Below, piece by piece: positions 44,315-54,292 of a stretch of DNA of 64,000 bases (positions are counted from its first letter, which is position 1; every line of letters starts with the position of its first letter). This stretch comes from Pavona decussata (taxonomy: Eukaryota). Under the pieces are notes generated by a model. It ran no database searches. It had not been told where the DNA came from and worked only from the letters and a program-made list of their open reading frames with translations. Where the stretch lies: assembly GCA_977016875.1 (NCBI GenBank), contig CDRNST010000046.1, forward strand, positions 3,968,001-4,032,000, read 5' to 3'. Both the position numbers and the translations under genes were made by a program.

Positions 44315-47300
44315 GTATGAGTTTAAGTTATGTTTAGATGTTTTTTTTTCTTTTTTATTTCGATAATAACCGCGATTTCATCCACAGACTGAGATATTCG
44401 AGCCACGTTATACAGCATAACAAACAGCTCCACAGGAAAGTACTGATCAGTAGCTATCATTTGAATGGTCACACTTTAGGATTTCATTCATTGACTCAAA
44501 AGTTAGAACCACCTTTCTTGTACAGCATAATAAACATCACCACAGGAAAGTACTGCTCAGAAGCTTTCATTTAAATGGTCACACTTTAGGATTTCATCCA
44601 CAGACTCACAAGTAAGCACACCTTCATAACATAACAAACAGCACCACAGCTAAGTATATTGCTACTCAGAATGAGCTAACTTTGTTAAATGGCTTCATCT
44701 TCACAGTTCCTGTCGGCTCCATCTCTAAGCTGCCGGCCAAGTCTTGCAAAGAAATAAAAGAGAATGAAGGAGGGCAAGCTGTCAATGGCAAATACTGGTT
44801 CTACTCCATCATACCAGGAACGAGTGTCCTCGCTTACTGTAACATGGCAACCGAAGGTGTGTAAAATAAAGACTGGTCAGAAAATTGTTTCTATAAAATA
44901 GCTGGGCTGTTGCGCGGGTAGAGTGAGTGCAAACAGTGCCCAAATGAAGCCAGGGCCAAACGCAAGGAACCGGACGTGAAGCGTGTAGCGTGAGGCATAG
45001 AAAGTTGAACGTAGGTGATGATAATCAGCAGGACCAAAAAACATGGCGGCTGATATTTTAACCCATAATTCTTAGCGTACGAAAACATTATAAAAGCTCA
45101 TTAAAACGCACAGAAAAGTTCCAAATCTTCAAACTTAGCAAACACAATGTAATTGGTACAGGAAGCAGCCTATTAGCTGTGATCGGCTCGCAAAGTATTG
45201 TGGTAAAAGCCGCCATCTTTTTTCGTACCTTATGTAAAGGAAATAACAACGAGGTGATAAAAACTTGCCTTCGGATTCAAAATTGCGTCGCACAGCCATT
45301 TTGATCACGTACAGCATGCCTTGACTAAACGAATCATCGTCTTCAAATAGTCCACGTAACAAGAAAGGGATGCAAGAGTCGATCGATGCCAAGCTCGTAC
45401 CAAGAATCTTCATTCCCCTTAACCATCGGTCGGGGAACAAGAGAAGTAAAATTCTTCAGCTTAACCATGCTTCAAATAACGGCATTTTAAAAGTTGTTTT
45501 CTTATTGCAAATGAATGTATTTTCAGTAAATTCTACTCAGGAGAAATCGCTTTCAATCGTTTTCCATTCTCGAAATTGGGTGGACAATGAAAACGGAACT
45601 CAAAAATAATGCATTTATGTGAGCTGAGCAATAGGCTTCCGTGACCATGAAAGTCATATACAGGGTTAAAAGGGATTCGAACCCATGACCTCTGTGATAA
45701 CAGTAAACCATCTCTACCAACTAAGCTATTAAGCCAACTGAAAGCTGGTCATTTTGTGAATTCCTATCACACCTATTGAAATAAAGCCGGATGGAAGTGG
45801 AGTGTATGCAGTTCATATATTTGAACAGTGGATAAAAGAATTAATAAATGAGACAATCGCAGTTACTGATTTCCGTACTTAACTGCGATCGTCGCTCATT
45901 TATTACTACTAATAATGGACTGTGTCTTAATCAACAAGAGAAAGTTACTTTCATTCTTCTATGAGGTTAAAAGAACGAAATCCTGTAAACAGACTATAAG
46001 AGAAAAGAAAAAACATGTAACAAGTTCCTCAAAATCGTGCTGTGTTTTCTGTCAGCATAAAGCTTCAAAAAAGCCTGGCAAATTTGTTTCTTTGCTTATT
46101 GTGTAGAAACCTTAAGACTAACTCGGTTTCTGTTACTTTTGTGTTTCCTCAGACATTGATGAATGTAGCGTTTCTCCTGCACTTTGTCACGCCAAAGCCA
46201 ATTGTGCTAACAAGATCGGTTCCTATGTTTGTACGTGCAAACCCGGTTTTACTGGAAATGGAAAAACTTGCAGTGGTAAGAAATGGAAGAGTTCTTTTGC
46301 TTGTGGTAACAGCTCATAGGATAATCATTTAATGTTATGTTACTAACGGACTGTATCTTAATCGATAAGAGAAAGTTACTTTCATTCTTCTATGAGGTCA
46401 AAAGAATGAAATCCTGTAAACAGACTATAAGAGAAAAGAAAACACATGTAACAGGTTCGCCAACTGAAATCGTGATGTTTCTGTCAGCACATAGTTTCCA
46501 AAAAGCCTAGCAAATCTGTTTTTTGCTTATTGTGCAGGAACCTAAAGGCTAATTCAGTTTCTGTTACTATTGTTTTTCCTCAGACATTGATGAATGTAGC
46601 GTTTCTCCTGCACTTTGTCACACCAAAGCCAATTGTGTTAACAATATCGGTTCCTATGTTTGTACGTGCAAACCCGGTTTTACTGGAAATGGAAAAACTT
46701 GCAGCGGTAAGAAATGGAAGAGTTCTTTTGCTTTTGGTAACAGCTCATAGGATAATCATTTGATGTTATTGTATCAATTGCAGTTTACAAGAACTGCGCC
46801 GAAGGTTATAAGTTCGGTAACCAGATCAGTGGAGTGTACAAAATCGATCCTGATCGTTTGGGTGAATTTGAAGTTTTCTGTGATCAGAAAACAGCCGGTG
46901 GAGGTTGGACGGTGTTTCAGAGGAGACAGGACGGCTCTGTAGATTTCTTTCGCGGTTGGGATGACTACAAACGAGGTTTTGGTAATCTGAACGGCGAGTT
47001 TTGGCTCGGATTGGACAAGATTCACCGCCTGACTGTTAGCAGCAGCAACAAGATTCGCGTCGACTTGGAAGACCTTCATGGTAAAACAGCATTTGCAGAA
47101 TACAGTTCATTTGCTGTGACAAGCGAGAGGAGCAAATACAAGATGAGCTTGGGTAGTTACTCAGGTAAACTTAAAAGGGATTCAGATTGAATTTTGTGAT
47201 GTAGGAAAGAAATGAGAAAGCGGTTAACCGACTTGTTAGAGTTATTAATTGGCTATTTTGAATCTATCAATTGTTAACCTGAAACTTTGATTCTGAATTT

Positions 47301-47843
47301 AAAATCTAAACTTTCCTCGCTTCTTTAAACCTCGAGGAGATATATGATGAACCGTCATTTCGTTTTAATAATTTAATAGCTCAGGAGTGCAGCATGTTGC
47401 CAATATAATTAATAATCCATGATTCATATATCAATGCAAATATCGTTACTTTAGCTACGAAAATGCTCCGACTTACAATCTCAAATGTGGTATCAAAAGC
47501 TCTGTTTCAGCCCGTTTCGGTAACGATTTCTTATTACTTCTTTCACTAGAGTAAAATTATGCACGCTTTTTGTTTTCTTTTCTAAGGTACTGCTGGTGAT
47601 TCCCTTGGTTATCATCGTGGTTCAACATTTTCCACCAGGGACAGGGATAATGACAAATGGTCAAACAACTGTGCCTTCAATTATAAAGGAGGTTGGTGGT
47701 ACAAACATTGCCACAATTCTAACCTGAATGGTCGGTACTTCAACGGGAGTATCGATAGCAGAGGAATGACATGGTACCACTGGAAAAATAACTACTACTC
47801 TGTGAAGAGGTCTGAGATGAAGATACGGCCAAAGGACTTTTGA
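43993..47843 (+). CDS. Gene B (spliced): secreted SP-PAN/apple-fibrinogen/COLFI-N-like module-2x cbEGF-FReD protein, 451 aa. Exons 43993-44314, 44707-44856, 46153-46275, 46584-46706, 46784-47164, 47587-47843
   Basis: Manual splicing. All introns are GT-AG and phase 1. The joined CDS is 1356 nt and open to TGA 47841-47843. Confidence 0.88.
44707..44856 (+). CDS. Gene B exon 2: fibrinogen/COLFI N-terminal-like mini-module
   Basis: Counterpart of 4937-5086, 150 nt, splice sites intact. Confidence 0.82.
46153..46275 (+). CDS. Gene B cbEGF exon 1
   Basis: [41 protein letters not shown], same peptide as gene A EGF1. Confidence 0.88.
46584..46706 (+). CDS. Gene B cbEGF exon 2
   Basis: [41 protein letters not shown]. 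Confidence 0.88.
46784..47164 (+). CDS. Gene B fibrinogen-related domain, first exon
   Basis: [54 protein letters not shown] is the canonical FReD signature. Confidence 0.93.
47587..47843 (+). CDS. Gene B fibrinogen-related domain, terminal exon
   Basis: [51 protein letters not shown]...[10 protein letters not shown] (not in the ORF track, translated by hand). Confidence 0.93.
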
Positions 47844-48589
47844 GATTCTGTGCTGTGTACTGAGTTTATTTACCCTGAAGTGTAACAAGTGAAGGAGAGA
47901 ATTAAAGGCTTGCATGAGTATAAGGAAGCTTTTGTGTGGTTATAGTTTTGTTTAAAATACCATAAAATTCCGAAATTAACGACCTCCGAAATCAACGTCA
48001 AAAAGTCGTGGCCCCTAATAAATCCCGAAAGTAGTGACCCCAACCCCCCCACCCCGAAATTTATTTTAATATAATCCGCCTAGTTACTCCTTGTATCGTG
48101 GGCTGGCGGGACAGTCACACGTCAATTGGAACAGAAACACGATAAAAATCTTTTCGTTTTTAAAGAATTAAATGGCTAATCATGCTTATTATGAAGCTTT
48201 GAAACAAAAAATTTCCTCCACTTTTTCGGTCAAAAAGGAATTCTTCTATTAACTTAAATCAACTTACATTACCGGTTACACTTTGTTGACAGTATTATCT
48301 GTTAGGAGACTAAAAACATGTCTTGTTTCAAGCCAAAACTCCCGGCAACAGTCACCAAAATGTCTTCAGTTGAGTTAAGAGTAGATTTTTTTTGTTTTGT
48401 TCAGTTATGCGATGCTTTCAATAAACTCCTTGGGTAATAACGGAATTTATATTTGTGTTGTTTCCTGTTTTGTTTCAGACAGCTTTGTTATTTTACGCTT
48501 TGTTTCGTTAACTGACAAATATCGAAGCCGAGCTAAAAGTCTACGTTTTAAAGATGTGGATGAATTCTTGACGCACTGTAGCATTTCAA

Positions 48590-53049: not shown

Positions 53050-53548
53050 TAGGGTCTGTCGGATTATGCCAGCATAATTTTGAGCATAATACTATATCTG
53101 GAGCATTAGGCATAATATTGGCATAATGCTAATGTATTTTGTAGCATAATGCTGTTGTTTCTGAAAACTGTGAATAGTGTATACAAATTTTGCCAGCAAC
53201 TCCAGCTAGAATGTACATAGTTGATAAAAGCGGGAGTATTTTAGGAACTGGATACCTTAGACTCGTACCCAGTGCGAAGGCCTGGTTACCTATTTATGCT
53301 AGGCTTCCAAGTTTGTACAGTGTTCGTGGATTTGCATCATGGCAGAATCAGATAATTGAGAAAGACTAGGAATGTTTAATGATAGGTACGGTCCTATGGG
53401 GGTGGGGGGTGGAAGTGTCATTTTAGTCCGGCATAATTTGAGCATTATACCTCCAGCCGAGTATAATTTTGAGCATAATACCCTGCTTTCACGGGTGACG
53501 CGCGAAAGCATAATACTCTATTTTACGAGCATAATCCGACAGACCCTA
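53050..53548. mobile_element. hAT-like MITE
   Basis: TIR TAGGGTCTGTCGGATTATGC, 8-bp TSD AAGAGGTT, subterminal GCATAAT repeats. Confidence 0.88.
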
Positions 53549-54292
53549 AAGAGGTTTGGGAGGGATCACGTTTAACGAATAGCAATAATTCTCAAAATAC
53601 CCCCTTTGCACGTTTATGGTTCAGGTTTCAACGTAAAGTTTCTAGACGTACTCAAGTGCTTTAAGGCTTGGTTATTTGTCCTTCAAAGACCCCCAGCAAA
53701 GATTTTAAGGAACCTCTATTCTCTGTCGAGAAAAGGATTAACACTATAGAGGAAATTCATTCCACAAACTGCCTGACTTTCTTGACCAAACAGAAGTCTT
53801 CCTAAGTGTCACGTGACATTCCTTGGTTGATGACGTCACATAACTTGTTTTTGAAAATGGGGAACATTTACATTCCAAAATTTTGAAAACGTTTGCCATT
53901 AAAATGTTTAGTATAACTGTGCCTACCCTAATTCCGCCTTTTAAGGTGATACTCGTTATTTATCTTTTAAGATATTTGGAAATTTTCATGTCATGTGACC
54001 CATTTTTCTTAATTGACCGTTACTCTTAAGATGTGGACATCATTAAAAGGCGAGATGATAAAGCCCTTAAAAGAGCTCATCGAGTAAGCAAAAAACAAGA
54101 TTGATATAATGTAGCATTTTGTTCCCCATTTTTGAGTAAAGATTTCATTCGTTATAAGTCGTTTTCAGGTCACGTGACTAGAATCTGATACAGCAAATTT
54201 TAAAAAAATTAATAAGGACACCAATAATAAACTGTTTGCCAAGTTTCACAGAGATCGGACAAATGCTTCCCCTCCGTCTCGTACATGTATAA

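Follow-up and report, generated by a model that had tools for sequence, protein, structure and literature searches.

The window analysed here, a stretch of 64,000 nucleotides from Pavona decussata (assembly GCA_977016875.1, contig CDRNST010000046.1, positions 3,968,001 to 4,032,000 of the forward strand), contains two tandem paralogs, A and B, of a coral-type gene. Copy A encodes a signal peptide and a PAN domain, followed by an exon named 'SCKEIK', an array of cbEGF exons and a terminal EGF'-TLDc module. Copy B starts with the same first exons as copy A, followed by two EGF exons and then by two exons encoding a FReD (PF00147), while its EGF'-TLDc exons lie further downstream. The reading that we favor, with a probability of about 0.85, is that copy B gained a ~7.5-kb piece of a ryncolin-like gene in the intron behind its last EGF exon, which replaced its TLDc end. 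Two tandem copies of the same gene from a related coral, termed U and D, serve for comparison; the end of the EGF array is present twice in copy U (U1 and U2).

At the site in question, copy B harbors ~7.5 kb and copy A 10-16 nt, the flanks being colinear on both sides. On the left, the two copies are alike up to and including ...CATTTGATGT (B 46766), and direct reading places the boundary at 46766/46767; in self-BLAST, A 25459-25967 aligns with B 46341-46773 at about 91% identity. On the right, the boundary falls at 54271-54281, and the match resumes at GTACATGTATAAAT(GAT)n (A 25976, B 54281). The alignment indicates that this match within a microsatellite is true homology and not chance, because B 54340-54466, immediately behind it, is conserved in three empty-site copies of a related species, and because, with a miniature inverted-repeat transposable element (MITE) specific to B taken out, the two copies meet again at ATTAC... 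(A about 26098, B 55279). Further downstream, self-BLAST pairs A 26200-32125 with B 55305-63997. The 10-16 nt of copy A at the site (AATGGTACGACTTCTT), called below the empty site, belong to the ancestral intron of the EGF unit. The initial annotation had noticed an additional segment of about 7.5 kb in B, absent from A, and had ended the shared part on the left at about 46766; self-BLAST and direct reading bear out both. The FReD exons account for ~1.06 kb of this segment, the remainder being 3' untranslated region (3' UTR), donor flank, repeats and non-coding sequence. The features of both copies are collected in Table 1.

Table 1. Coordinates of the features of copies A and B and of the segment specific to copy B (positions of the window).
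Feature	Position	Strand	Remarks
Copy A, first coding exon (signal peptide + PAN)	starts 4341	+	exon map
Copy A, cbEGF array	EGF between 6063 and 25900		six 123-nt exons, plus 'SCKEIK' exon
Copy A, empty site AATGGTACGACTTCTT	25967..25982	+	between EGF-unit intron and GTACATGTATAAAT(GAT)n
Copy A, terminal module	26824..28305	+	EGF' 26824-26952, TLDc exon 1 27497-27739, TLDc terminal exon to 28305; intact
Gene B, first coding exon (signal peptide + PAN)	43993..44322	+	open; 98.8% nt identity to A 4341-4670
Gene B, cbEGF exon, 123 nt	46153..46275	+	phase 1-1; Pfam and exon map
Gene B, last cbEGF exon	46584..46706	+	ends ...AGC G before gtaaga, phase 1
Chimeric 77-nt intron	46707..46783	+	46707-46766 EGF-unit intron, homologous to A, U, D
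Inserted segment, ~7.5 kb, B only	46767..54275	+	right end uncertain within 54271-54280
FReD exon 1	46784..47164	+	PF00147 positions 2-131; E 1.2e-48, 166 bits
FReD exon 2	47587..47843	+	PF00147 positions 138-221; E 8.4e-28, 98 bits; TGA stop
3' UTR and downstream flank of donor-type gene	47844..52415	+	47844-50388, 51179-51229 and 51945-52415 match L001/L002 units, 66-87%
Right part of insert	52416..54270	+	MITE-like element 53048-53550, 31-nt inverted ends
Right flank, GTACATGTATAAAT + (GAT)n(GAC)4 microsatellite	54281..54339	+	common to A (25976-26055), U, D
B-specific MITE, 812 bp	54467..55278	+	29-nt terminal inverted repeats, TA duplication; absent from A, U1, U2, D
Orphaned EGF' exon of B	56190..56318	+	Cys>Arg 56222-56224; TAG stop 56276-56278
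Orphaned TLDc exon 1 of B	57200..57647	+	split by 233-bp AT-rich insertion 57317-57549; 37-bp deletion near 57601, frameshift
Orphaned TLDc terminal exon of B	58013..58348	+	frame still open; below Pfam TLD threshold

The FReD exons and their source

The two FReD exons jointly span positions 2-221 of the 221 of the PF00147 profile, a full-domain match above the gathering score (cut-off 22 bits). The first begins with TT TAC AAG, and its TT forms a Val codon with the G of the preceding exon; poly(A) signals are located downstream of the second, at 47901 and 48017. The closest solved relatives of the B FReD are FIBCD1, the ficolins and the FReD of tenascin-R: the E value is about 1e-36 with FIBCD1 and ficolin-1, and exon 2 finds its best solved match in tenascin-R (E 1.5e-28). 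Alignment to the latter reveals that the Ca-site motif DRDND (DxDND) and the disulfide motif CxxxGGWWYxxC are kept.

A word-index protein search with the open reading frame (ORF) of FReD exon 1 retrieves thousands of coral FReD fragments, the best being 88% identical. Two long ENA contigs with top matches, L001 and L002, hold tandem arrays of short FReD genes, in which an intron of 315-406 nt separates two FReD exons from an exon 1 that specifies a signal peptide and a short coiled-coil stretch (MKYLFAIV...IEQQLAEIR...). The same short architecture is found in the NCBI models P0008 and P0099, 'ryncolin-1-like' (243-251 aa). Compared with coral ryncolin-like genes, exon 1 of B displays 85-90% amino-acid identity and exon 2 59-80%. 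Copy B resembles the ryncolin-1-like, ficolin and FIBCD1-type FReD lectins (PF00147) in its full FReD end; it differs from these genes, which use a signal-peptide and coiled-coil (or collagen) exon of their own to oligomerise, in lacking such an exon and in carrying the FReD on a PAN-EGF stalk. A tblastn search of the window found no donor-type exon 1 (MKYLFAIV...), nor any remnant of the exon 1 of a next donor gene.

The similarity to these genes extends well beyond the coding sequence. The insert aligns from 46768, 16 nt before FReD exon 1, to seven tandem FReD units of L001 and L002 at 66-94% identity, and the donor-type match reaches at least 5.6 kb downstream, extending as far as 50388 and recurring in two blocks, 51179-51229 and 51945-52415; the intervening gaps (50389-51178 and 51230-51944) have no match in the FReD units of these two contigs. 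The donor flank includes a minisatellite of ~105 nt per unit (48555-48997). To note, the same minisatellite occurs in the recipient intron (44374-44656, and 4714-4886), relative to which it is inverted at 48555-48997, as well as in L001, L002, L003 and L006: it is a dispersed repeat family and lies off the junctions.

The left joint lies inside the 77-nt intron that separates the last EGF exon from FReD exon 1. The first 60 nt of this intron match the EGF-unit intron, while its last 16 nt (46768-46783, ATTGTATCAATTGCAG), acceptor included, correspond to the 3' end of intron 1 of the ryncolin-like FReD gene (ATTGTATCAATTGTAG in L001), with a short microhomology (AT.GTA) at the joint. In the DNA runs X1 and X4 from the same organism, two contigs each match B from exactly 46768, at 95% identity or more, and read ACGTACTCCGAACAAAATTT... 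(ACGTACTCCGAACAAAATTTCATCACATTA) before this position, that is, ryncolin-type intron as in L001. This switch to ryncolin-type intron shows that the genome contains a donor-type paralog and fixes the left breakpoint to the nucleotide. FReD genes are present in very many copies, with a depth of 1200-1800 as compared to about 16-30 for unique sequence. The possibility that the insert is one full tandem unit, with both ends in donor intron 1, was considered and rejected, its right end being unlike the ryncolin intron.

Integrity of the exons and route of insertion

All six exons predicted for B, namely the PAN and SCKEIK exons, two EGF exons and two FReD exons, have open reading frames. Exons were joined in silico to see by which donor/acceptor pair the frame of B stays open, and to establish the phase of exon 1 of the donor-type genes. 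The last EGF exon ends in ...AGC G before gtaaga and donor exon 1 in ...AAA G before gtttgt: both introns are in phase 1 and split a codon after a G, and this codon specifies Val whether FReD is joined to the EGF exon or to donor exon 1. As both introns are in phase 1, splicing of EGF to FReD would keep the frame. The 213 FReD codons (639 nt) are free of lesions, and pairwise ratios of non-synonymous to synonymous substitution (dN/dS) against donor-type units are 0.30-0.45 for FReD exon 1 and 0.64-0.76 for exon 2. By contrast, ~520 nt of the displaced EGF' and first TLDc coding sequence carry four disabling lesions, at places where A, U and D are all intact. The lesions are B-specific, in agreement with the earlier description of the TLDc exons as orphaned. 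The contrast between 639 lesion-free nucleotides and neighboring orphaned exons with four lesions suggests that the FReD exons have been constrained since their arrival.

These data bear on the rival explanation that survives best, according to which the segment did insert but does nothing: its FReD exons would be a dead gene fragment in the intron or 3' region of B, and B as a whole a pseudogene without a functional EGF-FReD protein. No chimeric splice joint is seen among short contigs, the original end of B is broken, and the locus is in flux, with a partial third copy and many transposon insertions, all of which would suit such a fragment. We nevertheless hold this explanation to be unlikely: it has to accommodate six open exons out of six, canonical splice sites, donor and acceptor, 77 nt apart and in matching phase, the conserved Ca-site and disulfide motifs, and the complete lack of lesions in a 639-nt FReD close to exons that have accumulated four.

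The joints provide indications on how the segment arrived. Both breakpoints are intronic: in the recipient, the left joint falls after the first 60 nt of the intron and, in the donor, 16 nt ahead of exon 2, within a short stretch where recipient (AATGGTAC) and donor (AATTGTAT) resemble each other, while the right joint falls in the same recipient intron, its donor side lying beyond the 3' flank. A few bases of microhomology are found at the joint, and at most about 10 bp of the target were lost. Neither end of the insert (46767 and 54275) shows a target-site duplication, a terminal repeat or a poly(A) tail, the MITEs being internal or flanking only. Because the donor intron (47165-47586) is retained, the transfer took place at the DNA level. 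The microhomology, the small loss and the lack of target-site duplication or transposon ends point to break repair or template switching rather than to retroposition or transposon capture. The latter routes, whether by a Helitron, a Pack-MULE-like element, transduction by a long interspersed nuclear element or retroposition, are improbable: MITE-like elements and unexplained sequence at the right end of the insert could be invoked in their favor, but the retained intron is incompatible with retroposition, the ends lack the expected marks, and the left end lies inside an intron of the donor gene instead of at the end of an element.

The proposed sequence of events is as follows. Gene B would have started as a secreted signal peptide-PAN-'SCKEIK'-EGF-EGF'-TLDc gene, like A and both related-coral copies. 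After B had parted from A, a genomic segment of ~7.5 kb would have entered the intron behind the last 123-nt EGF exon, copied from a ryncolin-1-like lectin gene cluster and starting 16 nt upstream of donor exon 2. It would have brought along the acceptor, both FReD exons with their intron, the stop, the poly(A) signals and several kb of 3' flank, leaving behind donor exon 1 and the promoter; break repair or template switching with microhomology probably inserted it. EGF would then be spliced to FReD with the frame and the same Val codon kept, yielding a predicted product signal peptide-PAN-SCKEIK-EGF-EGF-FReD. The new stop and poly(A) site would have cut off the old EGF'-TLDc exons, which then decayed.

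Polarity in a related coral

A search with the ORF of TLDc exon 1 of copy A gave one outstanding match (87%; next 77%), on a 1.17-Mb contig from the same sample as L002, of which 39 kb were read (L003, L005 and L006). Copies U and D lie there in tandem, with a Rab3-GAP-like gene behind them; D keeps colinearity over the entire gene, and U over its 3' half and the downstream spacer. The second TLDc match, L004, was set aside, as it is an unrelated Ig/collagen-TLDc paralog and not orthologous.

The empty site is uninterrupted in four sequences, A, D (L003), U1 and U2 (L005). The array ends of U1, U2 and D read ...CATTTGATG(A/T)AATG(G/A)TAC(G/C)AC...(AAT/GAT)n, and the site is uninterrupted in the same way in A. 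The internal EGF units of the arrays also contain the bases missing from B at this place (AATGGTACGA) and the empty-site bases AATGGTAC.GA, which makes the uninterrupted state the older of the two. TLDc exons (EGF'-TLDc) are intact in A, U and D alike, and neither the 39 kb of the related locus nor the rest of the window contains a FReD exon besides those of the insert.

On shared alignment columns, the A-B, A-U and B-U identities are all about 89-91%, while D is more distant in most segments. On these grounds, A and B look co-orthologous to U, and the insertion seems to have occurred on the branch of B itself. Between D and A/B, identity is about 89-90% for the PAN exon and about 87-89% for the EGF' exon, and falls to 55-65% at the amino-acid level for the TLDc terminal exon (A 27979-28302, B 58013-58348, D L003 11305-11646, U L005); by eye, the terminal exon of U is similarly diverged. 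In addition, one DNA contig of run X4 is B-like to 46773 and then continues with an empty site (CGACTTCGCGTACATGTATAAAT) that differs by two bases from that of A. This contig might represent an allele of A, a further paralog or an allele of B without the insert, the latter amounting to a presence/absence polymorphism.

The initial annotation had put forward two models, an insertion giving B new terminal exons, or an A/B ancestor with FReD and TLDc as alternative 3' ends, of which A would have deleted FReD while B let TLDc decay. It had leaned toward the second, as the 77-nt intron is mostly A-like; the TLDc exons that still lie downstream of FReD in B also speak for that model. Its description of the intron holds as far as 46766, the last 16 nt originating from the FReD gene's own intron. 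The argument drawn from it fails: with its left breakpoint in the intron behind the last EGF exon, 17 nt short of the FReD exon, an insertion predicts just such an A-like intron. Under a double-ended ancestor, moreover, A, U1, U2 and D would each have had to lose precisely these 7.5 kb and to regain the unit sequence AATGGTACGAC, which internal EGF units also carry; such an ancestor does not account for the sharp switch to ryncolin-gene intron at 46768; and the 39 kb of the related locus, where TLDc is intact, are devoid of FReD exons and do not combine both modules. With an outgroup locus without FReD and an identifiable type of donor, the combination that the initial annotation had named as refuting its second model, we regard this ancestor as very improbable. 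Two of the checks that had been proposed bear on this choice: comparison with orthologous loci, through the empty sites and intact TLDc of U and D and the absence of FReD there, polarises the difference to an insertion, and the donor search recovered the ryncolin-like donor type and a paralog in the same genome, though not the exact donor locus. The insertion model is therefore supported by the empty sites of A, D, U1 and U2 together with the donor type.

Least credible of all is an assembly artefact, in which a piece of a FReD cluster was misjoined into copy B: the very high copy number of the family and the N gap at 39263-39435 might invite it, but the misjoin would have to fit 7.5 kb into continuous B-specific sequence with no more than 10 bp lost and a phase-correct acceptor created, contigs of the unique intron (47189-47608, zero mismatches) occur in two samples, and the B-specific decay downstream fits a real, old event.

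Several observations weigh against an insertion that led to a functional head replacement. The donor locus itself has not been recovered from this genome, and the FReD intron has a depth that looks single-copy at 95% identity or more, so that any surviving donor must have diverged. A sensitive BLAST search with 52300-54300, run against every FReD unit retrieved, found nothing past 52415, which leaves the right-hand 1.9 kb of the insert (52416-54270) without a match. The tandem copies resemble one another in a mosaic fashion, probably as a result of gene conversion, which makes the exact orthology of A, B, U and D uncertain, all comparators nevertheless sharing the empty site. The RNA joint 46706>46784 was not observed in four runs of short Logan contigs, and the FReD coverage in X6 and X16 may come from paralogs of at least 95% identity. 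Finally, the decay of TLDc could have come before the insertion rather than after it.

The arrays vary in other respects. The number of EGF exons is six in A, two in B and one in D. In copy U (L005, record ctg61307 251546-253900), the array-end segment, composed of the microsatellite and about 450 bp, is duplicated along with EGF units, giving rise to U1 and U2. The array of gene A contains a very recent internal duplication (6462-7946 and 10306-11788, 97.8% over 1.5 kb) and an inverted pair (7935-8503 and 9656-9088, 95.6% identity). An intron of the same gene houses a BEL/Pao-type long terminal repeat (LTR) retrotransposon on the minus strand (18403-25386), with two long ORFs matching Peptidase_A17, Integrase_H2C2, DUF5641 and DUF1759; its 448-bp LTRs (18403-18850 and 24939-25386) are 99.3% identical, and it looks like a young insertion. 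Between the two genes, a partial third copy, C (33305-38653, within the region 32299-39435), comprises only the upstream non-coding part, matching A 1-3906 and B 39530-43558; it is devoid of PAN or EGF coding exons and is followed by the N gap.

The predicted protein and its relatives

Exon shuffling by insertion at the DNA level into a phase-1 intron is the classical model for extracellular mosaic proteins. The case of copy B is exon shuffling of this kind, combined with the replacement of a terminal domain; the process is an ordinary one and involves no new mechanism. The likeness resides in both breakpoints being intronic, in both introns being in phase 1, and in the transfer of a whole-domain module that creates a new extracellular mosaic. 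Two differences stand out: the donor type, the empty sites and the displaced terminal exons are still visible here, and the module replaces the terminal domain, bringing its own stop and poly(A) site, instead of being placed between exons as in the classical scheme.

The predicted B protein would have undergone a head swap, from TLDc to a ficolin/FIBCD1-like domain expected to bind sugars or acetyl groups. Copy B has left the coral secreted PAN-EGF-TLDc family, whose architecture, established from Pfam matches and alignment of the exons, is that of A, U, D and the ancestor of B, by losing TLDc and gaining FReD. Tenascins likewise present a stalk of EGF repeats ending in a FReD. Copy B lacks their FN3 repeats and their N-terminal heptad assembly domain, its map consisting of PAN, SCKEIK, two EGF and FReD only; the likeness is one of analogy, not membership, and the B architecture would have arisen independently and recently.

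Literature searches on exon shuffling of coral FReDs returned nothing relevant. A broader reading, which we put forward tentatively and consider doubtful as yet, is that head exchange is recurrent in stony corals, with receptors built on a PAN-EGF stalk swapping TLDc, FReD and intelectin-like modules between tandem arrays. That such swaps would proceed by microhomology-mediated insertion of 3' gene pieces is an equally tentative suggestion. The occurrence of TLDc on an Ig/collagen scaffold in L004 is compatible with recurrent exchange and is no proof of it. If the exchange is recurrent, the present locus would be its first caught intermediate, with the displaced head still attached.

Exon shuffling is usually deduced from old and blurred domain mosaics. 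Here, each element of a single event can be read: the empty site, preserved in a paralog as well as in a sister species, the donor family with its exact intron breakpoint, the phase match, and the decaying terminal exons. Copies A (PAN-EGF-TLDc) and B (PAN-EGF-FReD) form a pair for comparison, with different heads on nearly identical stalks. The locus would provide a dated and mechanistically readable example of how candidate immune-recognition genes of cnidarians gain new binding heads.

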